A DNA stretch of 64,000 nt, from the NCBI GenBank assembly GCA_964270895.1, contig OZ185440.1, one strand, 5' to 3'. The notes under the pieces were generated by a model. That model was not told the DNA's origin. It saw only the letters and a program-made list of their open reading frames with translations, and did not search any database. The stretch is from Podarcis filfolensis (taxonomy: Eukaryota). Made by a program: the position numbers and the translations under genes. The first letter of the stretch is position 1; every line of letters begins with the position of its first letter. Of this stretch, positions 6,101-55,632 are shown in pieces.

Positions 6101-6324
6101 TCATCTCTTCCTGCCAGTATTCCTTCCTGAGCTAATCCATCAAGCTCCATGGAAGAGCCGAAAGGAGAGGGGCAGCATCTCTGTGGGGGCCATGGAGCTA
6201 GGTTCTCCCCACTCAGCCTCCACCAGAAAGACCATTCCTTTGGTTTGCTCCAACCTCTCCGTTGACACCTCCACAAATCTGTGGTGATGTTAAAAATAGT
6301 TATGACGATGCAGAGATGCTAGTG

Positions 6325-6454
6325 CAGGAGTGGGCAACCCTTCTCCTGTTGAGGGCCACATTCTGTCAGGGGCACATGATTATTGTGGGTAGGGCCAGAA
6401 CAGGCCAGACCAAAAAAATGAGTGGGGTCACTCCTTTTCTCTCTCTTTTTTCTG

Positions 6455-6486
<32 letters not shown>

Positions 6487-6671
6487 TTCTGACATCCTCT
6501 CTTTCTGTCCTGTCTCCCTGCACAGCAGGCTGTTGGTGGAGGGAAAGCTTTCTCTTCCCAGAGGTCTAAACTAATAGCTTGCAGAGGGCTTTTTGGAAAT
6601 TGACTTAAGGGCTCTAGAAAATTTGGCTGGAGGCCACATGCAGCCCTGTGCTGGTGGATGCTGCACCCTTC
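6325..6671. mobile_element. Degenerate hAT-type MITE containing a (CT)n tract, within the putative 3' UTR
   Basis: Begins CAGGAGTGGGCAAC and ends GGCCACATGCAGCCC...GCTGCACCCTTC, typical hAT-Charlie MITE termini. No intact TSD. Confidence 0.45.
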
Positions 6672-6798
6672 AGTTCCCCCCCAGAACAGAGCCATGAGAG
6701 TGGGCAGCAGGTAGCCTACAAGGGTAACAGCATCATACCACAGTTGCTGTGCTCCTCCAACTCAACAGAGAGAAGTAAGATGATGCACAAAGGAAAGG

Positions 6799-6900
6799 TC
6801 ACACCGCTGTCTCTTGCTCAGCGCTGGGCTCTTCCTTCTTCCTCTTCATCTTGCAGAAGCCATGGAGCCCACAGAAGCAAGCAAAGGTGAACTGGGGCAT
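6799..6900 (-). CDS. BLACAT1: 33-aa micropeptide MPQFTFACFCGLHGFCKMKRKKEEPSAEQETAV (BLACAT1 small ORF orthologue)
   Basis: ATG at 6900-6898 and TGA at 6801-6799, 3 nt after a strong acceptor. Matches my recollection of the human BLACAT1 33-aa ORF (MPQFTFACFCGLHGFCKMKRKKEEVHRERETAV) in length, the first 24 residues and the last 4. It lies downstream of mir-135b on the same strand, as in human. Confidence 0.88.
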   Translation of the reverse strand: MPQFTFACFCGLHGFCKMKRKKEEPSAEQETAV

Positions 6901-7131
6901 CCCCTGGGACAGGCAAAGGACAGGAGCATCCAAGGAAATCTATGCAAAGTAAGGTGAGAGAAGAGAAAAGCTTGGGTTTCTTTCCCCGCTTTCCAGCAGA
7001 ACATCTCTTACTTTCACTTTAGAGCAGCGTTCCAAATGCTCAGTGCATTAGAGAACAGCGGGTTTTCCACCTACAATGAATCTCGGCTCCCCCACCTAAA
7101 ACCTCTACATACTGGGGGGGGACCAGGGACC

Positions 7132-7309
7132 GGGGACCAAGCTCAGTGGTGAGGCATATGCTTTGCAAGCAAAAGGTCCAAGGGTTCAATCCTTAGCATC
7201 TCCAGTTAAACATCTTTCCCTGAGACCCTGCAAACCATCAGAGAATATTGTCCTGCACCAGATGGGCAAGGCCTCACCTGGTTGGTAGAAGGCAGCACCC
7301 TACGTTCCT
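7132..7309 (+). mobile_element. tRNA-head squamate SINE (Squam2-like)
   Basis: GGGGACCAAGCTCAGTGG...GGGTTCAATCC head and AAGGCAGC...GTTCCT tail. Related copies at 13290, 31215 and 40332. Confidence 0.7.
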
Positions 7310-7349
7310 TGAACATGGATAGCTGCTGCCATCCACAATCAGATTCAAT

Positions 7350-7743
7350 CAGTGGTGGGCCTACATTTGGTGGGCCCTGAAGTTTAAACTGTTATGGGGG
7401 AGCCCTTCGCAACCAGCAATGAGGTCTGGCTAACCACTGCTATCTTCTTAATTGGGTTATTCTACAACACATCACCACGTTTTTTAAAAAAATTAACTAC
7501 TACATCTCAGTTTTTCATTAAAATTGCTGTACTGGATTATCTCATGTCAAAGTCACTGGTGTGAACAAAAATGTCCTATGTCTTATAGTTTGAGTTACTG
7601 AAGGGAGGGGATGAAAATTAGGGAAATGTTACATATATGCATGATGCACTTTTTAAAGCAAATTTTAAAGCCATGTGGACTAAGGTCGCTTCTGGGGCTT
7701 CTCTGGGATTAGCTTCATTAGTTTCATAGTAGATCAACCCCTG
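7350..7743. mobile_element. hAT MITE, 394 bp
   Basis: Imperfect 15-bp TIRs (CAGTGGTGGGCCTAC / GTAGATCAACCCCTG) and a perfect 8-bp TSD GATTCAAT (7342-7349, 7744-7751). Confidence 0.85.
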
Positions 7744-10700
7744 GATTCAATCTACGATTCCTCCCCCCAAATTATAGTTTTGACACTCCCCACTTTTTTG
7801 TTGTTTTGTTCCCAAAAAAGGCCACCAGAAACTCATCTTTGAAAAAGCTGTTTCTGTAAATATTATGTGGAAAGGATTTCTTTTTGCAAACACTTCAATA
7901 TGAAATGCACACTGTGGCTGGGTTTGCCAGCGGCACCCCCCGCCCCCTGCACACCTGAAACCACATATGCCTTTCATGAATATACAGTTTAGGTATGGGT
8001 CGCCTCGCATCTCTCACATTAGAAATTAAGCACTGGGTGGCTGCCCCTCATCTCCATCATTCCGCCTCATTGTTTCTGACTATGGTCCAGTGACTCACAT
8101 ATTATCTTTGTGGTATGGTTGTTGCTGCAAAGCCACTCACCCACTTCTGGCTTCCATTTGGCATCAGTAATGTATGGATGTTCTAATCGTTCACCTTTCC
8201 TACACCAGCGTGGCTAGCTGAGGCGGCAGAGTACAGCTTCACCACTGTAGGTTTGATCCCCACATTGGGCATTTAGAATTGCTATCATGAATTTGGTATG
8301 TATTGACTCATTCATCCCTTCATTCACACGTTTTATATCCCAGCCTTTCTCGCAAACTATCTCAAGGCAGGTCACACTCAAATAAAAGATGCAATGAAAC
8401 CAGTCAATAAAACAATAACATCACCTCAAAAGATAGGTGGAGCAATGAGTGTAAAGGTTACCTTTGTAAAGGAGGCTAAATTCGACATACACGTACATCC
8501 CCCTGGGCTATTTTTCAGCCAGAACTTGGTGGAACTCAGTCCTGGCATCTCTCAGGTGGGTCTCATTGCCATTATAAGAGAACAAGGGAGGCTGTTCATA
8601 GTCAGTTTTGACACCTCTTTTCCTAGAAAAATAACACAGCATTCCCCCCTCCCAACTCTCAGTCCTCCATCCAGGCAAGCAAAAGGCGTGATCATGAATC
8701 AACGTTAAGCAATGGCTTGGAGGCCAACTTAACCATGAAGAATATGAACTAAGCGACAGCTTTTGAGGTTGGCCTTATTGCAGAGCAATGTGAAGCAATG
8801 TGGGCACCAGTCATTTCCCTCACTCCATCTCTGCGATGTTGTTTTTAAAATGAGGTTTCATCTTAAGATGAAAAGATGTCTAGGGCCTGAACTTCTCGTA
8901 GGGAACATAGAGACTCCAGCAAAGCCCTAACAATTATTTTCTTTGCACAAAGCTTGTGAAGTAAAATCAAACATACGGAGTCCAAATGACTTTTTTCTTC
9001 TCCCCGCCAGCGCCCCCACCACCATTCGCACTCCTGCCCCCACCGAATCACAGCATTCCAATCTGCGAATTACCTCAGCCAGATGAAAAAAGAAAAGGCG
9101 AAAGCCAAAATCCCCGGTTTGCCATGGTTGCTCTTCAATAGCTCGGCTAGCACTCAGGGCATGATTAAGCCCTCCAAGGTTACAGGGAATATTTGACTGA
9201 CCTTCTAACTTCAAACACAGCCGCTAGGCATTCATTAAATAACCCTTCAGCACCTCAGAACAGTCAGTTCCACATGGCAATAAAAATTGCATCCCTCCCA
9301 TCCTGTAACCTGGGAACCAGAGGAGGCTCGCTTTATCCTTTCTGTTTCAGCCTGACCTTGTCTTTGCAGTGACAGGCCCTGCCTTCAGCACAAAGCAGTC
9401 CCTGTGCAGATAAGCAAGACAAATGCACACCTCCCATTGAACTCACTTATTCAGCTGCACGCTCACCACCCCCACCCCCAGTTTCATTTGACAGGTTTTG
9501 GTATACCTGTCTGCCAGACACCTAGTTTAAATAAGGCCCCTGATGCTTCCTCTGAGACTCACAAAGCAATGACTAGGGACTCCTTAATGAGTCTTCCTGT
9601 CTGCAAGGTTTGTGAGCAGACCGCCAGCTCTGTGCCTCTCTCAGCTGCTTATATTGCATTCGTGCAAAAGAGTTTTCTGAGGTAATGGCCAGGAGAGAGC
9701 CAGTTCTACCAAACGAAGCTGTTGCAAGGCTAGTTATGCAGCCACAAAAGTGAACTCATTCTTTGCTTTCAGCCTGCAATTTTGCTGTCAATCCTCTCTA
9801 GGTAAATGGCATTGTCAGAAAGTGTTAGAATAGCTTAGTCGACACCAGATTCCATTAAAGGAAGGCAAAGAAAATAGGAAAAAGGAAACCCACTTTCTAT
9901 GGACATCCTTAAATTTTCAGCTTCTGTGTTTATATTCCCTCCCCTCTGGTTTTCATGTTAAAAACAAAAACACTTCCTAAAACCAAAGTAGAGGAATAAA
10001 ATGAATGCCAAACATCACACATCACCAGAGAAATCACAGTTTTTAAGCCATTTTATTTTCTTAAGTTTTTTTATTGCATACTTTGAATACATAGCATAAG
10101 GAAAAGTGTATTTAAATACCATGTGTACACTCAGGAAGAAAGTGTGTCACATACTGTTTTTTATTGTGTTGTGTTCTGAAATGGTTTCAAAACTTCTTTT
10201 ACTATAAATGTCTGCAAAGCATAACGCTGTTTAAAAGAGGGCATAAGATCTTAATTTTTTAAAAGAAAAGTAAAAATACTCGAAAATGTCATGTTTGCAC
10301 CTGCAACATCAGGCACTCTCCATCTGGTCTTCATCTCCTTATTTGACAGTCTGAAGGGCTGTGGTGGATTTCAAGTTGTCCGTGGCCTACAATACGCACC
10401 TGCTGTTAATAAATATATAATTTAAAGTACATGTGTATCAAGTGTCATAAGAGAGCACAACTCATCAGAACTAAATGATGCAAACAAATTGCTTCCACTG
10501 GGCTCAATGCTAACGTGTCCTGCTAAATAATTTTGGAAGCTTTGGTTTCCAAAGTTAATATATTTTTCAACTAAGTATTCAGGATAGATGCCCTGCTGCT
10601 TTTGGATTTGAAAGAGGAAAAGTATTTTTATTTTATGTGTTTGCTTTCCCCAGCTTAATGTGGCTTTCCACTTTTACCTGAGCACCTAAAACTATTTTCT

Positions 10701-10771
10701 TCATAGGCTCATTAAATAGTGCTAGTAGAACACTGTAATCTGGTGTGAGAGAGTAGGTTGGATGAAGAGAC

Positions 10772-10817
10772 TTTTTTATTATTTTATTTTATTTTATTTT
10801 ATTTATTTTATTTTATT
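10772..10817. repeat. (TTTTA)n microsatellite / retroposon tail
   Basis: Direct reading of the sequence. Confidence 0.9.
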
Positions 10818-10889
10818 CCCTCCCTCCCTCCAGGGTGTGTTACAGCATTAAAAACAATTTAAAAAACAATTTAAAACAACTTACAGCTC

Positions 10890-10950
10890 CTGTTTTGGAG
10901 CAGGTGGGTGGATTGGATCACCTTCTAGTCCCTTCCAACTCTATGACATA
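10890..10950 (+). mobile_element. CR1 LINE 3' end fragment
   Basis: GGATTGGATCACCTTCTAGTCCCTTCCAACTCTATGA resembles the conserved CR1 3' terminus. Confidence 0.6.
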
Positions 10951-11559
10951 TAGACAATAATTATTTTTTTTAAAAAATACATTGTCATGGTTCTTTTTTT
11001 TTTTTAAAAAAAAGATTAAGATCAAAAGGATTGTGCATAGCCTGATGTGGAAATGTGATGAACTGGACTCAAAATGAGAAAAATGAAAAACTGAACAATA
11101 CAAAATGGACAAATTTGTCACTCTCTACTCAAGGCAACTCACTAAAAAAGTAATCAATAAAAAAATCAAACTATAAATATCATAAGATTAGTAATGTACC
11201 GTACATATGAGAGGTCAAGTTAATTAAATGCACTTAGATGAATTGCCTTCATTGCCACTCATTGAGGCCAATGGATTGCTCAGGTGAACCTTTGTAAGTA
11301 AGCTGCTCCTCAACCTGAGCACCACACCTGATGGACCTCTCTTTTGTGTCCATCTGCTACGCTACAGTGCAATGGAATTCTTGGGAAAGTTCTCACAAGA
11401 AGTGGCAAATCTGAAGATACCCTGGCATCAGGTGATTTAAGGCTTTAAAGTTCCTAGGCTGTACCTTGAATTAGTAAGAAGTATAGTTGATACACAATCA
11501 TATATATATGTGTGTGTGTGTGTCAGTCGTTTATCTTGCCCAAGGCAACCCAAAGCCAT

Positions 11560-11705
11560 AAGGAAACATCCCACCCAAGTTATATGCACCAATCTCCCAA
11601 TCCCTGCTAACATCCTAGAGGCAACTTTCTGGACCAATTGAAGTTTTGGAAATGTCTTCAAGATTGGCCCCATGTAGAGCTCCTTACAGTAGTCCAACAT
11701 CATGT
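11560..11705 (-). mobile_element. L2-clade LINE ORF2 fragment
   Basis: Minus translation LDYCKELYMGPILKTFPKLQLVQKVASRMLAGIGRLVHIT resembles the L2 motif RLDYCN..Y.G.P......LQLVQNAAAR.L.G.....HIT. Confidence 0.75.
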
Positions 11706-13289
11706 TACTGTCGAAAGGGAAGCCGTGGCAAAGACAATAATCTGCTTACATTGTAGCATGAGATTGCCTGCTAATGGGATAGAGTATATACCAAAGTACC
11801 TGAGGTACATTTGCTTGCTGGAAGACCTGGGTGGTCTGAACGACAAGAGCCCCAATTCCATTAGGGAGCTATTGATGTATTTAGGAAAGCTTGTAGCATG
11901 GAGCCTTTTAAAACTGACCCTCCACTTTCCATTCGGGGGCAGACAATGATGAACGAGCCTGGAAGAACAGAGGCAGCACAGCTGAGTCAAATGCTCCTGT
12001 TCTTCTTGAAAATGGAGAAAAGGGATCTTTTAAGGAGTGAGGAATAATTAAAAAATAAATGAACTAGCGCTAGTGGAGTGACAGATGCCCTACTTGATTT
12101 GCAAAATCCAAGCATGTTTCATGGCCCTGTTCTGCCCTTTCTATTCAAGGGAGAGGATCCTTTGAATAGAACCCTCTGCAGCCAAGAAAATGTGGTGAGC
12201 ATTAAAAATGTAAAACCAAAGAATTCTCTTTAGTCATTTGCTTAACCTCAGACTGTGTTTGTCACTGTCAGAGTGATGAATTGGGAGCTGTCTGAAATCA
12301 GCATGCTCACTTTAATAATGTCACTTTCCCTGAGCTCTAATAAATGTCTTTCTGAACCAGCTGGACAGAACCAATTCCTTAGACCAACAATTACCGATTT
12401 CACCAGGTTTTTGCTCTTCTTAACAGTTAGGGCCCTGCTGCTGAAATTGGAAATCTTTATCCATTTTCACACATTCTCCCAGCCACGAGGAAAGGAGGAG
12501 ATCCAGTTTGTTAAAGCCCTACACAAGGAATTAGAGGGAAATTGTCCTATGGAAAGAGCAAGGAAATGGACTGATTTTTAATTCCCGTTTCCACCACCGA
12601 CACAAAAAGTATATATTGGTAAGGGAACTATTCTTCTCTTGGAGTATGCCTTCTTGGGGCATATCTACTATGTGTCCAGGAAAAGTGCAGGAGCAAACAT
12701 TAGAATATAAATGGACTCCTTCAAAGGAGCCTGCTCTGACCAAATCATGGATAATAGTCAATACAGGCAGAGCATGATGTCATGACCACATATTTAGTCC
12801 TGATCACATGAGTGCATCAATCTCTCTAAGATCTACACTGAAAAGATTAGACTAGCCAGCCATCAAATCTTCAACCACAGAAATGATTGTTTTGTATCAG
12901 ATGATTACAGGCCTGTATAATTTAAGGGTGCATCTCTATGCCTGGATGCCATTTAAAAAATCCAGGAATATGAGGATGTTGGTAAATAACATTACACCAC
13001 CATTTAAAATAAACAATGATTTAATGAGCACGTACACTTTTGTTCCTGTCCTGCTCTTCACAGCCAGAGTCAGGATTGTCACAGTGTGCAAACCTGGGCT
13101 GAGGGTTTGTTTGGAGAGAAGGAAATGATAAGCCTACATAGGCCCATGGGCTTGTTTCCTCACCTGCATGGTTTAACATGGCATGTGAACTGGGTCTATA
13201 AACCTGCATGTTTGAACTGCCAGGCAATAAAGGAAACACAAAATAAACTTTAACTGTATCAACATTTGACCAAGAAAACTGCAGACAAA

Positions 13290-13490
13290 ATAGGTACAGT
13301 ACTGTCTTACACTGAGTCAGGCTATTGGGTCTATCTAGCTCAGCCTTGTCTATTCTGAACGGCATTGTCTATACTGATTCTCCAGGATTTCCATCAGGAA
13401 TTTCCCCCAGCCTTACCTGGAGGAAACAGAAACTGAACTTGGGACTTTGGGCGTGAAAAATATGTGGTCTGCCACTGAGATACAGCACCT
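13290..13490 (-). mobile_element. Degenerate tRNA-head SINE (Squam2-like)
   Basis: Reverse complement is similar to the 7132, 31215 and 40332 copies. Confidence 0.6.
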
Positions 13491-13630
13491 CCTCCACGAC
13501 TCAGTTTGAATATTAACCAAGAAAGTCAAGTAATAGTGATATGTTAGGCACCTCTAGAACTGTGGTAGATTCTACCGCAAGAAAGAGCAGGTGCTCCCTT
13601 AGACGGCTACTCATAATAAAAAGTATACAA

Positions 13631-13984
13631 GGTAAAGGTAAAGGGACCCCTGACCATTAGGTCCAGTCATGGCCGACTCTGGGGTTGCAGCGCTCATCTC
13701 GCTTTATTGGCCAAGGGAGCCAGCATACAGCTTCCGGGTCATGTGGCCAGCATGACTAAGCCGCTTCTGGCAAACCAGAGCAGCGCACGGAAACGCCGTT
13801 TACCTTCCCGCCGGAGTGGTACCTATTTATCTACTTGCACTTTGACATGCTTTCGAACTGCTAGGTTGGCAGGAGAAGGGACTGAGCAACGGGAGCTCAC
13901 CCCGTCGTGGGGATTCGAACCGCCGACCTTCTGATTGGCAGCTCCTAGACTCTGTGGTTTAACCCACAGCGCCACCCGCGTCCC
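13631..13984 (-). mobile_element. Sauria SINE, full length
   Basis: 5' GGGACGCGGGTGGCGCTGTGGGTT head at 13984, (ACCTTT)n tail at 13631, and TSD TATACAA (13624-13630, 13985-13991). Confidence 0.95.
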
Positions 13985-16372
13985 TATACAAAGTTAAGGT
14001 ACCTACATGCAATTTATTAGCCTCATCCTCATCATTATTATTGCCAGCTGCAACTTGCCTGAGTTGAAATTGTACTGATTTGCTCTCCCTACCCCACCCC
14101 TGATGTGAGCTGCTTTGAGTACATTCAAATGGAAAAGCGGTAAAGAAAAATAAATTCCCTATTCAGTGTAATAATAGGAGCGGTTTTATTAGTTGCCATT
14201 TTAGTCTGCTGGTTATTTATATATCACATTTTATGGTTTGATTGCCATGTAACTCACCCTAGGACCTTTTGGTGAAGGGCAGATAATAAATATTTGTGAC
14301 GCAGGAGACCCAGCCTCTCAGGTATCCAGGGGCACTAACAAAAGCTCTCACACCAAACCACCTTGATTCTATTCAGTCTGAAATAGGGAGCAGAGGATAG
14401 AACAATGTACTATCCGAGTCAGGGCGAGTGGGTCCAACCACAAAAGGAAGCAAGGCTCCTGCACTTTAAACATGTGTGTAGAAGAGGGAAATTCAACAGG
14501 TGTAGCAATAAAAGCTACACCTGTTGAAATCCCCTCTTCTAAACAAGTCTTCAAGGTACAGGAGCCCGGCTTCCTTTTGTGTCTGGGCACGCTTGCAGGG
14601 ATAGTGGTTTGCGGGCTAGATCAATGGGGGAGACCCTCTCGGTCTAATTTTGCCTCTCTGGATCATTGCGATGATAACATGAGATAACTCCTACATATGC
14701 TGCTCTGAGCTCCTTCAAGGAAGGCTACAGTGCTAACATTTTTCCCCCTTCCCCGACCCTCCTATTCTTAATTTCTATGTCCCTTTCTTTTCCTGGCCTT
14801 CTTGTATTAACCGCCAGCCTAAGAAATATACACACATATCACAACAGCACATACCACCCACCTCTTGTGTTAAAAAAAAGCCTTAAAAAAGAAATAAACT
14901 CAATTAGCAAAGGGAAGCACTGGCTCTTTAAAAGGAAATAATGGTGCCTATACAGCTGGCGTTTCAGGTTGCAGTGTTTGCAGAGAACCACTAATTAAAA
15001 CATTGCTTCTGTAAAGTATGCTGATCCCATTGATTCCAATCCCAACCCCAACCCCCCCTCAGCCTTCATATACACACAGTTAATTTGCTGCTAGGAAAGC
15101 AAAGTCGCAAGGGTCCTCATTATAAAAATTTCACTGGCTGCAGCTAATGGTTGTAATTAATAGGTGCAATAAATTTCAAATGGCCAGCCAGGGTGTTCAT
15201 TAGTTTCAGCCTGAGTCAGCACCAGTGGGGTAGCCTGTTACTTAATAACCCATTTTCTAACTAACTGAAAGGGAGGGTGGGGAGGGTTCGACCCACCCAG
15301 CTATGGTTCAACACAACCAGAATTCTCTCGTCTCACTTGCCAAAAAGAGACAGAGCTGAGTAAATCATTTGCAGAGAACAATCTCCAATTGGACACACCT
15401 GCTTGCCCCAGTTGCGTAAGAATGAGGCAGGGCAATCCAGATTGTATGTTAGCCAACAGGCCAATGTACACAGCCACCTGCAACAATTTGGCCAGATCAC
15501 TTAAACACACACACAAGAAAAAAAATCCAGTGTATCATTAGTTACAACTAGGGACAGCACAGTTGTTAACTGTCAGCTCCAAGGAGGTAAAAATAAAAGC
15601 CTGACATGCTTGAGATATTGCTGAGCATAAGGAAGTTGGTTAATGTAGTGTATCTACTAGCTACATTTTCAAACAACAGACATCTGCTTCTGTGTTAAGC
15701 AGCAAAGTACATCACTATTGTGATTAGGTTTCCTGTAGGAGCAGGGCTCCTGTATCTTTAATACTTATGCAGGAGTTACGTTTTGGGAACTCTGCGAGCA
15801 TAAGTGAAATCATGTAAAGTGAGGAGTACTTTCCAAATGCCCTCTCTGCCACTCTCTCTTCCATCCATACCAAAAATATCCACAACTAGAATTGAAGGAG
15901 GCTGGAGGATGTGTGGGAAAGCGGTGATGACAACAACGCTGCCCCGCATGCCAGCTGTTAGAGGGAAGGCTGAGCAGCTTAAACAAAGGCCCACTGCACC
16001 TCCAGTCTCTTCAAGACTTCCTCCGCCTTCGCTGATGTCCTCTTTGGGCTCTGGGGAGGGTCTCCTCATGAGCCACGAGGACTCTCCAGCTCTCACCCAC
16101 CATTTCCTGGTTTGAATTGAATTATTTAATTATTCCCCGGTGTTTGTGCATGTTATGCTGTCGTGCACAAGTCAATTGTGCATAAGTGTGGGGGGGGGGG
16201 GAGTCTGTAATAAATAACAAAGTGGGCCCGGCAACACCATGTTGCGCTGTGGAGTCCTGCTGTTCCATCTGGGGTGGCCACTCACCCCTGCCCAAGGGAA
16301 TGCAACCCTTGTCGGAAAATAAAGGTTCCCTAGCCCTGCTTTCCTGAGAGATTTCAAGAGCAATGTCCAGTA

Positions 16373-16603
16373 CAGTGGTACCTTGGGTTACAGACGCTTC
16401 AGGTTACAGACGCTTCAGATTACAGACTCTGCTAACCCAGAAATAGTACCTCGGGTTAAGAACTTTACCTCAGGATGAGAACAGAAATCGCACGGCAGCA
16501 GCGGGAGGCCCCATTAGCTAAAGTGGTACCTCAGGTTAAGAACAGTTTCAGGTTAAGAACGGACCTCCAGAACAAATTAAGTTCTTAACCTGAGGTACCA
16601 CTG
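16373..16603. mobile_element. Tc1/mariner MITE, copy 2 (opposite orientation to copy 1)
   Basis: Flanked by TA on both sides, TIR CAGTGGTACC..GGTACCACTG, with an internal TTACAGACGCTTCAG tandem. Confidence 0.9.
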
Positions 16604-17024
16604 TATACAGGTTGTGAGACAGGACCCCTATTGGAGGAGACACTAAATGTGGGGACTCCCCTGGTTCATTTTTTTAGCTTCATTAGACCAACTCTTCCAT
16701 AGAGGCCCAAGCAGACTTGCTAATTATACATGTGCTCATTCATATGGCTTATAAGGCACCAGTGAGAGGCACAGCTGGCCCTCCCATGACGCGAAGGGTG
16801 GTGGTCACCTCAGGTGGCAGATCTGGGCCCAAGGAACATGCTGCTTGCCACTACACACACACACACGGAAGAGGTGGTGGTGTGGAGCACCCACAGAGAA
16901 GGAGGCAATGACATGTTGTGCCTGCAAGGGGGGTGGGGCTCAGGCAGCAAGCTGCCCAGGTCCAGCCTTGGTGGAAGGGTCAATATACAGACCAATGAGA
17001 GCACCTTCAAACAGGGAGTTAAGC

Positions 17025-17147
17025 TAAGGTTACCAGATTTTTTTCAGTGAATCCAAGGACACTTTTCAACTTCAATGGATTTTGTATGGGGACTGATTTG
17101 TAAATCTGGGGACTGTCCCCGGGAAATGGGGACGTCTGGTAACCTTA
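17025..17147. mobile_element. hAT MITE, 123 bp
   Basis: Perfect 13-bp TIR TAAGGTTACCAGA / TCTGGTAACCTTA and perfect 8-bp TSD AGTTAAGC (17017-17024, 17148-17155). Confidence 0.92.
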
Positions 17148-19591
17148 AGTTAAGCCCACCCTGCCTCACTTTGCTGCTTTAAGCTCTTTTTCTCAGATGA
17201 GCTTCACCCCCCCCCCTTTCAACAGTGGCGTTGCCACTTACTGCTAAAACGCCATCTGAGCACCCGGTGGGGAACATGGCGGGTAGCAGTGGTGCTACCA
17301 CTGCAGAAAAATACTGTGCAGTCATGGCTGTGAGGGAATGAGAGGCCCCTCCAGCAACACCATGCAGGGGCCCCTAAAGCCTTGTGCCAGCTCTGAGAAT
17401 GCTGGACTAGACTGCATCTGGGTCTGATCCAGAAGGACTTTTTTATATACTTAAGGTTTGGGTACAATTTGGCAGAGTCGGGGGCAATGGCTCATGTATT
17501 CCATTAAGGTCCGCCCTCCCTTTCCCCCTATAATTTCAACAATTAGATGACATTGCCACACTAATTTATCCATCCTATTGACAAAGCCCTACACAAAACG
17601 AAACGCTTTCTCTTGCCGTCCTTGCCGTCCGATGGGAGCATTGCAGGAACAGAGTGCTTCTTTTGGTATCTGCTTTGCTAAAAGGAAAATCAATAGCATA
17701 AAGAAGAGCGATGCAAAGTGTGAGGGACAAAGATCTAACCTACATTACAAAAACTTGGTGATAAATTTGTTCAGAGCCTCTCTGCTAAACAAACGAATAT
17801 TTATTGGGGACAACCTCACTTACTGTTTCTTGAATCTGTTGATATACGAATATAAAAATTTGCTCTTACAAACAATTGCCTGTCTCCTGTGTCTGGAATA
17901 TAAAAAAGGATGTTGGGCGCTCAATATTTAATTAAACAGAGAAACAAATTATCCCTGTCTCTTAGATTAGCAGGAGAAGCATTACAATTACAAGCAATTA
18001 GAATACGCAGTCCAGACCTTCTGCCATCTGAGATGGGGCTGTCTAAGGTGGAACTATATGCAGTCCTGCAACCACTCAGCAACACTGCTCAATTCCGATT
18101 CTATTGTACCTGTATGATTAGCATGTTGTTTCTAAAATCAATATCTCGCTTGGCTGTTACAGAGATCACCAGATTATCAGTTTAGTTCATTGCCTGCTTT
18201 ACAAGGGTTTTGTGAGTCCTGCTTAGTGCTAGACACAGATTCAGCTAATATATCCCCACCCCCACCCCAAGGAGAAGATCTTCCTTTCTTCTCTGTTCCA
18301 GCCAGGATTGCTACTTATTTACTGGCCACTGCTCCTGTGCATTTAACAGCACCTTCATCAGCAGACATGAAACACCAATAACACATATCTGATGGTCATG
18401 AAAAGCTTCACCTACTGAAAGGCAGCTAGCTGCCTTTAAAGACATAAGAGTTGGCCAAGTGGGTCATTTTCCTAGCCAGCTGTCAAGCCCCAGAATACAT
18501 ATTGTACAGAGTTCTAGGGTGCTTCTAGATAACCTAGTTGTTGAGCATTCACTCTGATTGGTTTGTGGAGAGGCTCAATGACATTGCGACAAAGCAAAAT
18601 TTGCCACACACTTTCCACTGCATTTCCCCATCCCTTCCCTTACTGCAGAGTCTTTTGGGGAAGCAAGTTTGTTCCATAAGAGCTCTAAACCAGCTTTAAT
18701 TACACAACCTGAATTTGCTGGTATGTGGTTGTCATTATTTTGGGATGGGATTCAGTCTGGAAGTGCCCCTTTGATCCTCGTAAAAGGATCACTGTCCCTA
18801 TGGATTCTATCATCATCACCACCATTTTAATGGACTGTACTGGCTACCTCTTCCAGATGAACTAACTTGGGGATCAGAAAGTAGCAGAAGTGAGCAAGCG
18901 CCACACAGGGAAGGTTGAGGGTTTGAGAAGAGCTGCTCCTCAATCCTTTTCAGTAATGTTGACCATTTAAAAGTCTGGCCTTCAAAAGCTCCTGGGCCCC
19001 TGATGCAGCTGCCCTGATCATTAAGAGATACAATTGGGGGGGGCGGAAAAAGCGAAAACAGGCCTGTACATTCCATAGGGGTTTTGTTCCAATTCAGGCT
19101 CGGCTAAAGGCAAAGGGGATTTTGCTCATTACTTTCCCAGCACAAGAAAACATTTTGGTTTGCAACAAAGAAGCTGGTTAAATGGGTTCTTTATCCCCCT
19201 CCATCCCTTTTCCTATTATTGCTAGTTAATTAGGCACTGGCCATCCAAGTCCCCTTCATTCACCGCGACGAGAAATACAATCAGAAAAGCAGGTGTGTGG
19301 TATGACCTTTGCAGTTGGCACTGCAGCACACAAAGGGAGTGTCTGCCATAGGAGCAGAGGCGCATTTTCTAGGGTGGTCGTGTTAGAAAGAAGTCTCAGA
19401 TATCATACGCCTAGATATAAAGGAGTAGGAGGTGGAGGAAGACCTCCATCCACCCACTTTTCAAAATAACCTATCCATACACAAATACACAACTACCCAG
19501 TCATTCAGTGATAAGACTGGCAGCTGTTTACAGCAAGTAAAATGTAGAGCTCCTTGCTATAGCAACATGCGGTTCTCAGAGGCACTAACCA

Positions 19592-19844
19592 CAGCTGGAT
19601 TGCCAACTGACCAGAAAACCCCAAACTGGCTTGGTCTGCCATATTTGCTTTTATTAGCTGCTTGATCTGCCAAAATTAGCAGGTGGAACTTTTTATAGCC
19701 CGGAGGAAAGTGTTATCAGCTGCTCCTGTCTGCAGAAATCAGCAGGTGATTTTTTATATATATAACAGCATGCAGATAAATATTATCACCTGCTGGTGTT
19801 TGGACACCAACGGGTGCCAAAGGCACAGCTAGGGAAGCCAGTTG
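19592..19844. promoter_or_regulatory. Candidate intronic enhancer: cluster of 7 E-boxes
   Basis: CANNTG at 19592, 19604, 19680, 19717, 19743, 19787 and 19839, in non-repeat DNA about 1 kb from mir-135b. Confidence 0.35.
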
Positions 19845-20823
19845 AGAAGCTGATAAGACCATGCTAAAATGCCCAGATTTTGGTATATCAGGCTCTCCAA
19901 ATGTACTGTGAAGGGGCTCTCTCCAACAATATTCTATCAAAATTCAGCTGATTGTCTTTTTGGCAGAGTATGCTTAAAAGCAACAATCCTTCTTAAGCAG
20001 AGGCAGATCCGCCGTACTCAGTGGGACATAAGAAACATGTTTAGGACTGTGCTGTGAGAGTGTCATCAGAAATCAGAACTCCACATGTATGTTTGTACCC
20101 ATAAGTTTGGCACCACATACATATTAAGGAGCAGGGCTTTTTATGTTGCACTTTTAAAAGGAAGCAGTCTTCATTTGCAGATTCCCTAGCGGCAGCAAAT
20201 CCATGTCTTCCGGAGTGGTGGTCTAAAAACTATTGTAACTGTGCTGTGGGCTGAAAAGTCAAACTTTTCGATTTCTTAGCTTCCCTCAGCTGTTGGCTGG
20301 GACACCTGTGGAACCTGACTGTGAGAAAGGAGAAAGTATCTCTAATTACCTGGTAGCTGCTCTCGGCACGCCTAGTTAACCACCATCACTCGGTGTATCT
20401 TTCATGGTAATGGCTCTGCATTCTGCTCAGAGCATTTATTATGTTGGGCTTTTTGCGAGGCAATGGAATCTTTGGGCCCTGGGTTTGAAAGCAGAGGTTT
20501 GGTGTGGGTTTTTCTTAAAAAAAGGAAACGTCTCACAACAACTGAGCTGTACCCTGAGCACTGCAGTGGCTGTTCTGGCCTCTGGATGGAGAGAAGAAGC
20601 CCAGAAGTATAGAGACCAGTCCCTTCACCTCTGTACGTTCATTTGCTAAGTATTCCTTGCCACATTCACCCAGCTAAGTCTCGCTATACCCTAGCCTCTT
20701 TTTCATTCGCCGTTGGTTACAAAATAAATATGGATGTTTGGTTTTATTAAATGAAGGAGGGATAGCATTAAGGAATCTGTATTTCACACAGCTTTGCTGA
20801 GGTGCCCAAGAAAGTGGATTATT

Positions 20824-20909
20824 CCTCTGTGTAGCCCATGGCTTTTAGCCCTACATGAGTTATGAAAAGCAATCACATAGGAATAAAAAGCCATAGACCA
20901 CAGCAGAGG
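20824..20909 (-). ncRNA. MIR135B: pre-mir-135b (mir-135 family, BLACAT1/LEMD1-locus paralogue)
   Basis: 5p arm UAUGGCUUUUUAUUCCUAUGUGA at 20895-20873 (miR-135a-5p-type sequence). 3p arm AUGUAGGGCUAAAAGCCAUGGG at 20856-20835 (the miR-135b-3p sequence). Flanks CUCUGCUGUGG / GCUACA are as in mir-135b. The arms pair as an 86-nt hairpin. Confidence 0.97.
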
Positions 20910-22420
20910 GCTTAAGGAGGATAAGCGGAACGACTTTAGAAAAATACAAAAGGAGGGGAAGAAAAGGGGCCACCTTGACTGTGTCTCCAGTGTTCCACAT
21001 TACAGAGGCATTCCAGGAAATGCTACCTTGGCTAGTCATGTCCTCAGTAATTGATCCACTTTGATAGTTTCCAGTCTACTCTAAGCTCAGCCCTAATGAA
21101 ATTTCCTTTGTCTGTTTGCGCTCATCTCTTGAGATAAGCTTTTAGTGGCCTCATCCTGCTTTTGCAGAGCAGGGGATATCTTAGAATGAGTCTCAATAAA
21201 TTCGAAAGTGAAATCCACAAGTTCCTGATTGCTCCAGCAAGTTCCCCAGACACATGTGGAGCCAGATAGCACAGCCCATATAAAAGTATCCAGCACTGCT
21301 AGGATTTGGCTAAAGGATCAGCAGAGCATGTTGACTGCTAGACACTTGGGAAACTGGCTGTACTTTGAAGAACTTCTGAAAATAATGATGCACTCCAAGC
21401 TCTCCTGAAAGAAGAGGAGTAAAATGGATTTGACAAAGATCATATAGCGCAAGTCTCTAGGACTGAGCTCAGATATTTTCACTGGATGAATTAAATTTGA
21501 AATCAACCTTCAAATCTTTTTGTATTCACCTCAGATTCTCCAATTCAATTAAAAAATCTCTCTTAACAATTTAAAAGTTTACATTTAAAACATTTGTACG
21601 TATAAACGTGTATAATTTGCTTGATCGTTGTCCCTTTCAGGAAACATCACTGCAAGGGATCTGTTTGCTAACTGTGACACAAAGGGAAGAGGAATTGCCA
21701 AGCCTCTGAAAAAGCCAGCTCTCAAAGTATTATATGACAAATAGCCCCCAAACCAGTCACAGCTGGCTACATTTGAGTAACATTGCACCATGCTGCACAC
21801 TGAAATCAGGATATGCCAAATTGAGTTTGAAAATTTACTGTAGCCCAATTGTTCTGCATTTGTATTTTTCCTACAAGACACGGTGAGGCAAGCAAGGCCA
21901 ATTTCAGATATGCACTCCCTATGCTCACAACTGTAGGTTTTATGTGTATGATGCTCAGCGGCTCATGCAGAGGCGCACAACTGCTGGCAATTTTCTGTAA
22001 GATACGGAAAGATAATAGATCAGTGAAAGAGAAGCCACTTGCTATTCTTTCAGCAGTGAATTATTTTCCAGCATTTTCCCATAAGCATGCATTTCAAATG
22101 CCCCTTTGTAGACATGGCAGGCAGCAGGCATATAAGAAAAATGCAACTTTGAATACAAGTCCACAACTTGAGTGTTTTCACAAATATGCAATGCTGCCTT
22201 TCAGCCTGAAATGTGTCCTTTGTGAATGTTATGCAAGTCAGAAAGGGAGAAGGAAATACTTTTTTAAACCAAATGTACATTCTCCAGTCAATGTAGGTTT
22301 TAATTCCATTTACAGACACAAGAAACGCGAGACCTGATTTAAGCATCACTCATGAAAATGGCCTGAAATGAATGAATGCCAGCCTGTGGAGCTCTGAAAG
22401 GTGTACAAAACAAGACTCAC

Positions 22421-22566
22421 TCTCTCTCTTTTTGTAGTTCCCAGACAAAAGGGATAAAGAGAGTTGCACTGAGTGTACGATTTCCGCCTCCCGCGTTTCA
22501 GGTGGATGGTCTCTCTCCTCAGCTGCCTTTTCAAAGGAACCTCTCTCGGTGCTTAGGCCGGGGAAA
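22421..22566 (-). other. Candidate 146-nt internal exon of the mir-135b/micropeptide host transcript (AUG-free)
   Basis: Acceptor CCCTTCTTTCTTTTTGTAG| at 22567, donor GAGA|GTGAGT at 22420, CpG-enriched interior, no ATG, 1.5 kb upstream of the hairpin on the same strand. Confidence 0.62.
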
Positions 22567-23175
22567 CTACAAAAAGAAAGAAGGGCTCTTGGAATAAGGA
22601 AAATGCTTTAATTAGAGAAGAACAAAATCTCCCCAGTGCTCCTTCCTACAGATGGGAACAGTTCCTGCTCTTTAATGAATGTGTCTGCACCTTGTGCTCA
22701 AGATGGGATTTGTGGGCTAAATCTGCCGAGCGCCTGTGGAAATCAATGAACTTACATGAGTTTGGCCAGCTGAAGGTTTGGCTCTCTGCCTTTTACTTTC
22801 TCTCTGTACAAACACTGCTCTGACTCATGCTTGTTCAACAACAGTGCTTATTTACTAACTTAACCAAGACAGGAGGATGGCTGGTAGAGGAAGAACTTCC
22901 ACATCCATCTTTTGTTCCTTCCCCAAGACTTCTGAAACTGCTATTTTTAAGCAACCTCAGAAAGCTAGTGTGCTCTGTCTGTCTGTCTGTTTGTCTCGGC
23001 AGTGAACCTTGCATCCTACAATGTGGAACATCTGGTATGACTTTGCCTAACATTGCTGGCTATTGAATCACATGGGCTCTCAATTCTGACCTAACTATTC
23101 CCTTCCAAAGCCAGAAAAAGTATGTATATGTGTGTATTTATAGGAAAGTCATTATTTCTATGAGAGCAATAAGCA

Positions 23176-23178
<3 letters not shown>

Positions 23179-23213
<35 letters not shown>

Positions 23214-23237
23214 TGTGTGTGTGTGTGTCTGTGTGTG
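23179..23237. repeat. (GT)n microsatellite, imperfect
   Basis: Direct reading of the sequence. Confidence 0.95.
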
Positions 23238-23500
23238 CTGGGAAGATGTCCAGTGCATGACCTGCTGCAAAATCTAGGCAAGCTCAGATGAATGATCCCC
23301 ATCGCCCATAAACACCCATCACAAATACATGACAGCCAGTATGATGCGGTAGATGAAGTGTTTGGCTTAAGAGGAGAGACCTGGATTCAAACCCCCATTC
23401 AGCCATGAAGCTCAGCCAAAGTTGATTTTAGGTCAGTTACTGTCTCTCAGTCTGATCTACCTTATAGGATTGTTGTGAGAACTCACCCTTCACCATGCTC

Positions 23501-23504
<4 letters not shown>

Positions 23505-23574
<70 letters not shown>
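23505..23574. repeat. Compound (TC)n(TG)n microsatellite
   Basis: Direct reading; it sits in the tail of a degenerate SINE. Confidence 0.95.
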
Positions 23575-23578
<4 letters not shown>

Positions 23579-25862
23579 CTATGTACAATGCCTTGATCTC
23601 TTTGGTGGAAGATAGGGAAATAAATAAATATGCATACCTTTCACAGCTGCAGTGGGTGCTTCTCACTAGCTCACTCCATAGTGCTAAAGAAAGCTGAATT
23701 GATCATGAACGAACACAACACAAAATACCCTTTCTTGTTTTACATTTTGTTTTAAAACTTTGATTAGTGCATAGTTCATTTAAGTGCAGAAATTAGGGTG
23801 GTTTGGTTGTGTCCATCACAGGAGACACGGCTGTGAGTGCCCTCACCATATGCTGTTATAAGGTCATGTATCATGGACAATGTCCTATAAAACAGTCAGT
23901 ACAAAGCTGTAATCTTCTGTGCATGCTCTGTGTTTCAAACTATATGTCCAATCATAATTCCAACAGCTGCTAAGAGGACCTCTGTCTTATATATGCACCT
24001 TCCATTTCACTGCAACATCTGTTAACTTTATTCTCTCCTTTTACACAGGCCGGAAAGCTACATGTCTAGCTGCATTTGTATGGGCAGTGGCCTTATGTGG
24101 TGTCCTCAGGGCATGCATAATATGCTATATGTACAATATATTTTTCCCCACTAAAAGGTCATGGGAATGAACCATAGAGTGCAGCTCCTGTTTTCCAGAG
24201 GAGTCATGCAAGCTTAAAGTGAGGTCTCTCTGGAAACTTCCCACTTCTACCAGCTCATACTGCAGTTAGGTAATTTTAGTCTCTGAACTTTATGTATTTA
24301 GGAGGACTGCTCTCCTTTAAATGGTGATGTGTGTTATATCCCTTACTTAAAAAATAAAATAAAATAAAATGTGGTTAGCTAAGCCCACAGTGTTTTGGGT
24401 CCTCCCCTCCCATCCATTCTGATTCATGGTGTCCTGGACTTCTGCCCCAGAGACCTATTCTGATGATATCACTGCTACCAGCCATGCAACCACCAGGAGC
24501 AAGTATGGCAGTGGAAATGGCTCCTTTACTTTACGGCCTGCATAGTCAAAGATGGCAGTATTCTGCACTATGGTTGTACAGAGGGGAAAAGAAAAAATGG
24601 AGGCCTCCCATTCTGCTCCTCCTGCCTACTCAGTAGGGGTGTTCAAGCATTACCTTCATCAGGTGTACTATATGTGTACCTGTGTACACAAATAGCTGAG
24701 CTGTATGCTCATAGTTATTCTCATGTAACATAATATTCAGTGGGTGTGCAGTCTGTGTATTTAACAGTTGGCTGTACAAGTCATCAAGTGTACACCCTTT
24801 CAGACAAGCAATTGTACACGCATAGATACAGCCTGAAGGGAATTTCAGCAATGCATACATAAAGGCCAGTTTCACAAGTGATGCTTGAACATTTTTGGAT
24901 TTCCCACTATAAACCAAATTTAAAAACCTGCTTTGACCGAGCTCATATATTAAATATGGCATGTTGGCACCATTAATCACAACAGGACATCCCATGCTAA
25001 CAGTACAATCATACATGCTTGCTCAGAAGAAAGTCCTGATAAATTCATTGGAGCTTAGTCCCAAGTAAGTGTTCAAAACCTTAAACTACAAACAGTATTC
25101 ATACTTACCTGTGAATAAAGACCACTGGATTTAGTGGGACATACAGCTTGTTCAATGCACAAAAAGTCATCTTAGCATCATTTGTGAAAGCACCAAAAGT
25201 CATAGCCTTTTATTCCAGATTAATTAGCTTCAAATGACCTACAACTCTATGTTCAATCACTAACACAGATTAGTCTTCTCTATGGAGCCATCTCCCCTCT
25301 AAAGGCCTTTTCGCACTTGCTAAAAACTTAGTTAATTTCTCTGATGTTTGCTGGTCATTTGTACCAGTTGGTTGTATTTCTTAATTTTATTCCTTCCCCG
25401 GTCTGCCGGCTGCTATTTTAGTTTGTATCGTAATTTTAATATTTACTTGTTCTTATTCTTTTTACTGTAAACCGTCTTGCGATTTCAAATGAAAGGCAGT
25501 ATAGAAATATTTTGTGTGAAAAAGAATAAAAGAATAGGTGCACGCTCTGCACCTAAACGTACACAGAAAGCCGACAAACCCTCCAGCTCTTTTGCCACAC
25601 TTCATCCCCCATGTATTGGCTGTGCAGTTGCAAATAAGGGTAGATACAGTGGGTCAAGGCATAAACGAACCAGAATGATCTCGAACCTGGTGCTCTCTAA
25701 GTGCTCACACCTTTCACCGCCACCTCCACTTCCCCCCTGCTGCCAAACCATTCCTCGCCACGCTGCACATACAACATGCACACCCCTCTCCAAATTAAAA
25801 GGACCGAACCTGAGACTTATTCTGAAGTCTCTGGTCTGACCACTAGACGCAGATGATCTCAC

Positions 25863-26440
25863 CTTCAGCAGACAAAACCCCCTGGCAGCGGAGAGGGTGC
25901 CAAGGCAGGCAGGTGGGAAGGATGCAGGCCTTAAGGACAGCACCAGGTAGCAGCATCAAGCCCTCAAGCTGGTGACAAGAAGCCAGGCCAGGCTTTGTCC
26001 TTCCTAGACCTCCCATCAAAGCTTCAGGAAAAGATTGTCCCACTTGTAAGCACCCAAGCAATCCAGCTGGTGGCTAGCCCTGAGCACGCTGCTTTCCACT
26101 CCAGCTTCGGAAATCTGAGCTGTGTGTCCAACTAAACCTGACTCATTTTGTGTGTGTGTGTGAAGCCCCGGACCCCTCCCTTCCCCTCATCTCCCCCCTC
26201 CTCTCCCCTCCCTCTAGGTTCCTCCGGCAGTAGCCAAGCAGCTACTGTTGTGCTTCATACTTGAACTGATTCCGCATCAAGGCTCTTGGCGGTGGTGGAG
26301 GCGGCCGGGTGGGGGGAGGCTGGGAGAGATCAGGTATTTCTCCATTCCTGACTCTGGAGGGCCCTGGTAACAAAGGCTCTATTTAACCAGATCCTGTGAA
26401 GCAGAAACCTCTTGTATCTACTTCACTGCCTTTGATCTAA
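25863..26440 (-). promoter_or_regulatory. Candidate promoter and first exon of the host transcript
   Basis: GC/CpG-raised non-repeat segment with a TATA-like TTAAATAG (26386-26379, minus), TCF/LEF consensus CCTTTGATC (26429-26437), a second CCTTTGTT site (26376-26369), and a strong donor CTGAAG|GTGAGA at 25863/25862. Confidence 0.45.
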
Positions 26441-27570
26441 CTCCCCCAGTGGGATGTGTATTAGTCATGTCCCTCCTGCTAAGCTGTTGCAGCCAAGAAC
26501 CTGGGGTGTAAGCTCCCCTCCACCCCTCCCCAGCTTCCCCTGTTTTGGAAGGCCTCTCCTCCTCTGTGGAGGCATGGCAGAAAGGGCTCACCCATCCCTG
26601 TCTGGTCACAGCTGTTTCCCTGCCCTACAGCCTCTCCCTGCCCCAAACAGGCAGCGCCTTCCCAGCCTCGAGATTTTCAAGGATGAGATACAGACACTTA
26701 TCCCTGCCTTTTATCACTCGCCCAACCATTGAAGTGACAGCATCAATATTCCGCTATGCCTTAGAGCCCTCTTTTATTATGAGCTTTTTCCCCCTTGCTG
26801 TGACTAAGCACCTTGCAAAATCCATTCAGTCCTGGCTTAGCATCCTGAGAACATTGAAGCTGGTGGATGCGTTTCTTTTTTCCAAAAGGGCTTTACTGGC
26901 AGCTGGACAAGGGGCAAACAAAGGAAATATTTGACTGGATGCCTAGATCTTCTGGTACTGAATGTGCTTTTTAAACTCCTGCCTTGCGAAGATCCTCTGC
27001 TGTGGCTCCTTTATCACAAAAAACTTTTTTTGGGGGGGGGTAGAGGCATTGTGGGGAGATATATCTTAAGAGGATGTGGTCTTTGGATTATGGGACCCAA
27101 GAAGCAGAGCTAGCCTCCAACAGCTACCAGAATTTCCCCCCACTGATAACAAATGCCTTAATAGCTTAGATCAGTGTATTGTCAATGACTGAGAAAACAT
27201 TTATGTTTTCCATTGACCAAGTGCAGGCAAGTCCCTCAGAATTTTAAAGTTATTCTGTTCTTCTGGCACCCTCCTACATGGTCTTATTTCCAGTGCAGAA
27301 AAGAAAGACGGAGAGCTAGTATCTTCCCCAACCTCTAGTGCCTTTCAGATGTTGTTGGACTACAACTCCCACCATCCCTGACCATTGGCTATGTTGGCCT
27401 GGGGTTATGGGAGTTGTAGTTCCATCTAAACATCTCGTAGGCATTAGGTTGGGTAAGGCTGGTATAGTGGCTAGAATGTCATCTGGATGACATCTGGATT
27501 GTCCATTGGATGATCTTGGACCAGTCACTGTCTCCCAACCTAATCTACCTAACAGGATTGTTGTAAGGAT

Positions 27571-28218: not shown

Positions 28219-28700
28219 GTTGTTGTTTAGTCGTTTAGTCGTGTCCGACTCTTCGTGACCCCATGGACTAGAGCACGCCAGGCACTTCTGTCTTCCACTG
28301 CCTCCCGCAGTTTGGTCAGACTCATGTTTGTAGCTTCGAAGACGCTATCCAACCATCTCATCCTCTGTTGTCCCCTTCTCCTTGTGCCCTCCATCTTTCC
28401 CAACATCAGGGTCTTTTCCAGGGAGTCTTCTCTTCTCATGAGGTGGCCAAAGTATTGGAGCCTCAGCTTCAGGATCTGTCCTTCCAGTGAGCACTCAGGG
28501 CTGATTTCCTTCAGAATGGATAGGTTTGATCTTCTTGCAGTCCATGGGACTCTCAAGAGTCTCCTCCAGCACCAGAATTCAAAAGCATCAATTCTTCGGC
28601 GATCAGCCTTCTTTATGGTCCAGCTCTCACTTCCATACATCACTACTGGGAAAACCATAGCTTTTACTATGCGGACCTTTGTTGGCAAGGTGATGTCTCT
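28219..28700 (-). mobile_element. 5'-truncated BovB (RTE) LINE, ORF2 C-terminus still open
   Basis: Translation RDITLPTKVRIVKAMVFPVVMYGSESWTIKKADRRRIDAFEFWCWRRLLRVPWTARRSN...VHGVTKSRTRLND* is the BovB C-terminus. Short (AAC)n tail; perfect 13-bp TSD ATTTATGATGTTT (28206-28218, 28701-28713). Confidence 0.96.
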
Positions 28701-29182
28701 ATTTATGATGTTTATATACCACTTAATCATTCACATTTCTAAGCAGGGTACATAAAAACAGAACATACAGAGAATGCAATAACAGAATAATGCAAACTTA
28801 TCATAAAACTGAACACTACATTAACATGCCTGCTGGAACAAGCAGGTCTTAGTCATGAGTCTGAAGTTCAGCAAGGACAGTCCCTGCGTGAAAGAAGGTC
28901 CACAGGTTTGGGCCCACTGCACCCTAAACGTATTCAGTTTTTCTTGGTGCAGGATTTGGATTGCTTGGGCGCATACTTTTTATTTTTGCACACAGCTTTT
29001 AAGATGTCCTACAGGGGAACTTCAGAACTGGAGGAGAATGTAGTTAAGAATGTGTCTTCCAAACCTCCCTCTCCTACCAGCCACAACACTTAATTCCTCC
29101 ATTAACTCTGTTGACCTAGACGTCTCAGTTCAACATATAATCAGGTGCATCCAAGCCCATTTATTTCAGTGATCTTAGGAGC

Positions 29183-29341: not shown

Positions 29342-29412
29342 TGCATTGACCAAGAATTAAGCCTGGGCCTCCTGAATGGCAGTCAAGAATTCTACCACTG
29401 AACCACCAATAC
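29342..29412 (-). pseudogene. Full-length tRNA-Gly(GCC) pseudogene (71 nt)
   Basis: Minus strand GTATTGGTGGTTCAGTGGTAGAATTCTTGACTGCCATTCAGGAGGCCCAGGCTTAATTCTTGGTCAATGCA aligns without gaps to vertebrate tRNA-Gly-GCC at about 58/71. Changes are mostly transitions, and the T-loop/B box is broken. Confidence 0.88.
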
Positions 29413-32549: not shown

Positions 32550-32778
32550 AGAGCCAGAGTGGTGTAGTGGTTAGAGTGTTCGACTAGGAGCTGAGAGACC
32601 AGGGTTCAAATCCCCACTCGGCCATGAAACCCATCAGTTGACCTTGGACCACTCAGTGCCTTGCAGCCAAACCTACCTCACAGGGTTGTTGTGGGGATTA
32701 AAGGAGGAGGGAGAGAATCGTGTCTTGAGCTCCTTAGAGAAAAACACCAGGTATAAATGCAATAAATAAATAGATAAA
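32550..32778 (+). mobile_element. tRNA-head MIR/L2-tailed SINE (Squam3-like)
   Basis: AGTGGTGTAGTGGTTAGAGTG...GGGTTCAAATCCCC head, CTACCTCACAGGGTTGTTGTG core, and (AATA)n tail. Confidence 0.75.

Positions 32779-55587: not shown

Positions 55588-55590
<3 letters not shown>

Positions 55591-55632
<42 letters not shown>
55591..55632. repeat. (TG)21 microsatellite
   Basis: Direct reading of the sequence. Confidence 0.95.

Follow-up and report, generated by a model that had tools for sequence, protein, structure and literature searches.

The 64-kb window analysed here, a stretch of 64,000 nucleotides (nt) without N runs from the lizard Podarcis filfolensis (contig OZ185440.1 of assembly GCA_964270895.1), is identified by its sequence as a wall-lizard locus orthologous to the BLACAT1/MIR135B gene of other vertebrates. 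In kind it is ordinary, an intronic microRNA (miRNA) within a host gene that codes for protein; its components are largely present in RefSeq and other public annotation already, and the layout is annotated in many vertebrates. The reading we favour, with a probability of roughly 0.65, is that in this lizard miR-135b and the mRNA of a conserved 33-amino-acid peptide are derived from a shared primary transcript. RNA polymerase II would start at an amniote-conserved promoter at ~26.5-26.3 kb on the minus strand, and exon 1 would terminate at 25863. After it would come a long intron holding both the mir-135b hairpin and a pair of conserved non-coding elements. Drosha would crop the hairpin out of this intron during splicing of the exons, which would lead to the last exon at 6939, probably through a lacertid exon whose end is at 8141. 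The last exon would encode the 33-amino-acid peptide, so that one primary transcript would supply both miR-135b and the peptide mRNA.

The peptide is encoded by a small open reading frame (smORF) at 6799-6900 on the minus strand (MPQFTFACFCGLHGFCKMKRKKEEPSAEQETAV; 33 amino acids and a stop), which starts with the ATG at 6900-6898, ends with the TGA at 6801-6799 and has a coding span of 6900-6802. Its sequence occurs letter for letter in NCBI and UniRef, identifying it as the BLACAT1 micropeptide, and it shares a 90% cluster with the RefSeq 'bladder cancer associated transcript 1' proteins of chicken, grouse, manakin and turtles. Exhaustive and word-based searches also retrieved identical or near-identical peptides from alligator, many birds, other squamates (Varanus, Anolis, Pogona, Hemicordylus and Paroedura), frogs and mammals (platypus, one marsupial and many placentals), together with a further homologue from axolotl, while homologues listed as uncharacterised proteins are found in mormyrid fish, characiform fishes and catshark. 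Across 14 aligned vertebrate sequences, 19 of the 33 positions are invariant, including C8, C10, H13, C16, K19, K21, K22, T31 and V33. Synonymous and non-synonymous codon changes in the lizard smORF number 5 and 0 against one bird locus (L001), 11 and 0 against Tympanuchus, and 14 and 8 against frog, as for a coding sequence. The reading frame is under strong purifying selection from shark to mammals.

Two segments of the peptide are invariant over this same range: an N-terminal hydrophobic C-x-C-x2-H-x2-C at residues 8-16 (6879-6853), followed by a basic KxKK patch, and a C-terminal E-T-x-V of the class I PDZ-binding type at residues 30-33 (6813-6802). The Cys/His segment is a candidate lipid anchor or metal site and, taken together with the KxKK patch and the E-T-x-V terminus, it suggests a membrane-proximal PDZ ligand. 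The neighbours of the 33-residue reading frame in the ESM Atlas were at chance level only. The full-text literature searched yielded no paper mentioning a BLACAT1 peptide; RefSeq already carries the protein.

The mir-135b precursor hairpin lies at 20823-20909 on the same strand (Rfam RF00246, 81.7 bits, E 1.2e-16). The match covers positions 1-88 of the 88 of the model and exceeds the gathering score of 59.2, which places the element in the mir-135 family; the segment folds as a single long hairpin (-51.8 kcal/mol, z = -5.8), a stability equalled by none of 200 shuffled sequences, and is 90.6% identical to the fur-seal hairpin. That it precedes the BLACAT1 smORF, with both on the minus strand, identifies it as the mir-135b paralogue rather than mir-135a-1 or mir-135a-2. 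The 5p arm of the lizard hairpin reads UAUGGCUUUUUAUUCCUAUGUGA, and its predicted mature form carries U where human miR-135b has C. A single nucleotide distinguishes miR-135a from miR-135b (PMC8876324).

The order of hairpin and then smORF on one strand recurs in fur seal, three birds, frog and a characiform fish. In order to place the first coding exon relative to the miRNA, loci were chosen around RefSeq isoforms with an N-terminal extension. The fur-seal locus (L009) has a coding exon at 10001-10078, the hairpin at 11527-11613 (85.2 bits) and the smORF exon at ~19715-19858; the corresponding features are found at 23597-23728, 25557-25643 and 32459-32587 in the prairie-chicken Tympanuchus (L003), at 10001-10066, 14583-14668 and in an exon ending at 23551 in the sparrow Ammospiza (L004), and at 10001-10013, 20933-21019 and from ~38076 in the frog Pyxicephalus (L002), where the hairpin scores 56.8 bits (E 1.7e-11), slightly below the gathering score. 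Two other prairie-chicken isoforms have first coding exons farther upstream, at 10001 and 19214-19224, giving three alternatives in total. In all the RefSeq models mapped, the N-terminal coding exon is thus upstream of the hairpin, which falls within a coding intron. In Ammospiza nelsoni the smORF ATG has been lost at 23450-23455 (GAT GCC for ATG CCC), the annotated product has 63 amino acids, and the annotated coding sequence (CDS) must therefore begin in exon 1, upstream of the miRNA. The order and strand are also the same in the bird locus L001 and in the characiform Metynnis (L006; miRNA at 4425-4511, smORF at 10001), and no mir-135 was found within 10 kb in Paramormyrops. By comparison with the models of these other species, exon 1 would be joined to the smORF exon in the lizard as well, and the peptide would be translated from the exon-1 isoform.

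The promoter of this putative host transcript can be located by the same comparison. A conserved block at 26256-26530 (minus strand) aligns with the 200-300 nt that immediately precede RefSeq exon 1 in two birds and fur seal, its counterparts being L003 23241-23513 in Tympanuchus, L004 9689-9868 in Ammospiza and L009 9652-9851 in fur seal; because of this placement directly 5' of exon 1, the segment is read as orthologous to the promoter of the host gene, 5' of the miRNA. Stretches invariant between lizard and birds are AGATCAAAGG (26438-26429), TTAAATAG (26386-26379) and ATGGAGAAATACCTGA (26345-26330), and the five residues encoded by the last of these, MEKYL, form the N-terminus of the ostrich RefSeq protein. 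A further conserved non-coding block at 26879-26954 (minus strand) is collinear with the promoter block and shows 75-76% identity to L003 23002-23077 and L004 8365-8441. As a separate observation, the promoter block holds a perfect TCF/LEF-type AGATCAAAGG and a nearby CCTTTGTTAC, both invariant between the lizard and two birds; the exact AGATCAAAGG 10-mer is absent from the fur-seal locus. A response of miR-135b to Wnt/beta-catenin has been reported, with which a TCF/LEF-type promoter motif is consistent.

Exon 1 itself is supported by lizard RNA over 25863-26051 (minus strand), and its 5' end may reach ~26350. A 189-nt contig of RNA run X5, with a depth of 152, spans exactly this interval and stops precisely at the proposed donor, AAG/GTGAGA after 25863, whereas another contig extending into the intron (25279-25889) has a depth of only 6. 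The plus strand offers no canonical splice site at this boundary, and a minus-strand donor at 25863 is therefore the simple reading. The hairpin, the smORF, the exon-1 donor and the promoter-like segment had all been proposed in a preliminary description of this stretch, and all four were borne out: the hairpin as a full-length family match, the smORF as a reading frame of 33 amino acids, the donor to the base by the end of an RNA contig, and the promoter by a conservation in two birds and fur seal that is above chance.

Between the miRNA and the smORF exon lies a further exon known from wall lizards. The RefSeq product of Podarcis muralis LOC114599306 (P0066, 54 amino acids), found with 6802-6939 as query, matches the window with 100% identity and coverage and has the layout MPNGSQKW/ISLDAPVLCLSQG/MPQF..., the coding part MPNGSQKW being located at 8141-8164 on the minus strand, with the donor TGG/GTGAGT after 8141. 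Around 8164-8141, some 128 nt show no difference among three lacertid genomes, although elsewhere these diverge by 2% and 6%. The exon may start at 8217 (preceded by cctcag) or at ~8244 (preceded by cctacag), or at a transcription start site below a TATA-like GATATAAAAC at ~8337.

The last coding exon, from acceptor to stop, spans 6799-6939 on the minus strand. Since P0066 reads through in frame over 6939-6901, upstream of the smORF ATG, the annotated acceptor is catag/A at 6940/6939; the distance from acceptor to ATG is 39 nt in lizard, frog and characiform, 42 nt in Paramormyrops and 22 nt in the prairie-chicken RefSeq model, and the fur-seal alignment extends beyond the 6939 acceptor, to 6965. 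The preliminary description had begun the terminal exon at 6903; the motif it relied on, cccag/G at 6904/6903, is present inside the 6799-6939 exon, but the homologous and annotated acceptor is the one at 6940/6939. When the latter is used, an out-of-frame upstream ATG (uATG) at 6929-6927 precedes that of the smORF. The 3' untranslated region (UTR) is placed approximately at 6180-6798 (minus strand), where words from RNA are present in X1-X4. No canonical AATAAA was found before 5278, and no miR-135 seed sites were found in the lizard 3' UTR. The stretch 4500-6798 has no repeat copy elsewhere in the window, and sampled words from it are present at 24-27% in X1-X4 and at 10-14% in X5-X8. Both exon-1 and 3' UTR words are present in X5, whose contigs are ~3% divergent from the window, a divergence that lowers its share of exact words.

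Several observations weigh against a shared primary transcript. RNA contigs were compared over 20950-26900 (5,951 letters), and among them no joint or loose end ties the exon-1 donor to anything, although a junction-bearing contig would share just 30 letters with this stretch. The exon-1 reading frame, compared with a collection of 5.8 billion proteins in the hope of a spliced product, gave no match. The peptide has no Pfam family and is unstructured in an AlphaFold2 model built from the 14-sequence alignment (predicted local distance difference test score of 52, no secondary structure). The RNA-supported part of exon 1 contains two ATGs in weak context and, if it is spliced directly to 6939 or 6903, both open out-of-frame reading frames overlapping the smORF start; the directly spliced isoform may therefore be poorly translated. 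By a frame reading made by hand, entry at 8217 would instead end the exon-1 uATG reading frame at a TAG before 8164. Finally, X1-X3 hold 3' UTR words and no exon-1 contig, and the only N-extended lacertid RefSeq product, P0066, begins at 8164, 3' of the miRNA, with the conserved TATA-like motif ~170 nt above it, which leaves room for a second promoter making peptide mRNA without the miRNA.

These last points, together with the hindrance by exon-1 uATGs, are what would be expected of two units on the same strand, in which the 26.4-kb promoter would drive a mainly non-coding primary miR-135b transcript and most peptide mRNA would come from a promoter 3' of the miRNA, for example at the TATA-like motif, so that miRNA and peptide would be largely uncoupled in this lizard. 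The invariance of GATATAAAAC and its surroundings in three lacertids favours such an arrangement too. This is the main rival reading, but we consider it unlikely, as the upstream coding exons mapped in fur seal, prairie-chicken, sparrow and frog all lie 5' of the miRNA, and the 8.2-kb exon has good internal acceptors as well, before 8217 and ~8244. Missing exon-1 contigs in X1-X3, moreover, prove nothing, and alternative first exons farther upstream, of the kind seen in birds, could explain them equally well.

It is distinctly improbable that the principal use of exon 1 is in a LEMD1-like gene situated to the left of the window, with the smORF exon skipped, that gene as the miRNA host and BLACAT1 merely overlapping it: human miR-135b does lie within both BLACAT1 and LEMD1 (PMC8876324), LEMD1 has been named as its host gene (PMC8876324, PMC8121828) and the splice target of the 25863 donor is unseen in the RNA contigs, but the RefSeq models of bird, frog and seal show their exon 1 homologue spliced straight onto the smORF exon, both uses of exon 1 can coexist, and no LEMD1-like exon was found in the window by a weak test. 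That test was a tblastn comparison of the window with provisional CDK18 and LEMD1 fragments, which returned noise only and is no more than a lead. The neighbours predicted in the preliminary description, LEMD1/KLHDC8A on the left and CDK18 on the right, would lie beyond the ends of the window, and the comparison gave no exon of theirs within it.

The shared transcript as favoured here differs in its exon chain from that of the preliminary description, which had inserted an ATG-free second exon at 22421-22566 (minus strand). Motifs of the form AG...GTGAGT without an intervening ATG are indeed present there, but the exon is unsupported: birds show no conservation of it, and a crude scan of the same 21 kb found eight comparable acceptor-donor pairs (50-300 nt apart), three of them ATG-free, which puts the motifs at chance level. 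The sole contig over it, from X2 (22389-22658, depth 3.3), is unspliced and was rejected as evidence for the exon, as it reads through both proposed splice sites. This contig, otherwise identical to the window, has a 2-nt deletion at 22418-22419 that takes out the GT of the GTGAGT donor, so that the donor site is polymorphic. The same description had overlooked the wall-lizard exon with the CDS part 8164-8141. Of its proposal of a bifunctional host gene, the BLACAT1/MIR135B orthologue, the conserved reading frame and the upstream hairpin on the same strand are supported; the second exon, the 22421-6903 junction and the 6903 acceptor are doubtful or wrong.

Two further elements lie in the presumed intron. 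The first, at 11822-12401, has 78-81% identity over ~570 bp to three birds and is enhancer-like, with indels that are not in threes and no conserved reading frame; the second, a conserved non-coding element at 14811-15255, has 73-82% identity to birds, and its part 15154-15257 also matches fur seal. Homeobox-like AT motifs are abundant in both, which are probably developmental enhancers. Upstream, the collinear conserved non-coding blocks 55311-55604, 56568-56699 and 62442-62584 are shared with prairie-chicken L003 14329-18346 and fall where the prairie-chicken has its alternative upstream first exons. Coding potential was rejected after a check for the conserved blocks at 55-62 kb and at 11.8-15.3 kb.

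The remaining observations concern repeats and other RNA genes. A reading frame of 167 amino acids at 28227-28730 (minus strand) presumably resembles the C-terminal end of an RTE/BovB-type long interspersed nuclear element protein; a Pfam search of two long reading frames gave no match for it. Adjoining it at 29342-29412 (minus strand) is a transfer RNA (tRNA)-Gly-like sequence (Rfam tRNA, 47.9 bits), probably a short interspersed nuclear element or a pseudogene. Dispersed repeat copies with 80% identity and opposite orientation are found at 8505-8637 and 58431-58562. In the fur seal, a 7SK RNA match (L009 1648-1933, 207.9 bits), either a gene or a pseudogene copy, lies ~8 kb upstream of BLACAT1 exon 1. 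In all three bird loci, a well-scoring tRNA gene (67.7 bits) occurs 5-9 kb downstream of the smORF (L001 18935-19006, L003 38231-38302, L004 28598-28669), with no counterpart 3' of the smORF within the lizard window.

In practical terms, the result for the lizard window is a gene model with its errors corrected. Beyond it, numerous cancer studies have treated BLACAT1 solely as a long non-coding RNA (lncRNA), with miR-135b as a separate oncomiR. In the mammal, bird and frog models the conserved reading frame is accompanied by an intronic mir-135b, and knock-down or over-expression of either could therefore alter the other; it is reasonable to expect that the peptide may confound phenotypes ascribed to human BLACAT1 or to miR-135b. 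The gap is one of recognition, not discovery: behind a much-studied 'lncRNA' stands a micropeptide gene of ancient origin, linked to miR-135b. More tentatively, miR-135b and the Cys/His-rich, PDZ-ligand-tailed micropeptide of 33 residues may possibly have been kept together in a single transcription unit from a time before bony fish and tetrapods diverged, with the peptide itself going back to sharks. Were this so, the two products would be functionally coupled, and much of the literature on the BLACAT1 'lncRNA' and miR-135b in cancer would unknowingly be about a peptide-coding gene.

The lizard locus shares with the human BLACAT1/MIR135B/LEMD1 region (1q32.1) the peptide family, the miRNA paralogue as judged by position, and a hairpin that precedes the smORF in the same orientation; it differs in a lacertid-specific additional exon at 8.2 kb and in that no LEMD1 exon was found in its window by the weak tblastn comparison. 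Intronic miRNAs in coding hosts are exemplified by miR-33 in SREBF and miR-26 in CTDSP, where, as here, a sense hairpin lies within an intron of a coding transcript and cropping and splicing can use one primary transcript. In the present case, however, the host protein has just 33 amino acids, the gene is widely treated as an lncRNA, and its placement in the lizard rests on comparison. Peptides are also known from miRNA host or primary transcripts, including the plant miRNA-encoded peptides (miPEPs), whose reading frames precede the hairpin and which exert feedback on their own primary miRNA by raising its transcription, and the micropeptide of human MIR155HG; such peptides are usually poorly conserved. 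These systems have in common with the lizard locus that a miRNA and a short peptide arise from one locus. Whereas a miPEP is encoded in the 5' part of the primary miRNA, the lizard reading frame belongs to the last exon and lies 13.9 kb beyond the hairpin on its 3' side; its conservation extends from shark to mammals.

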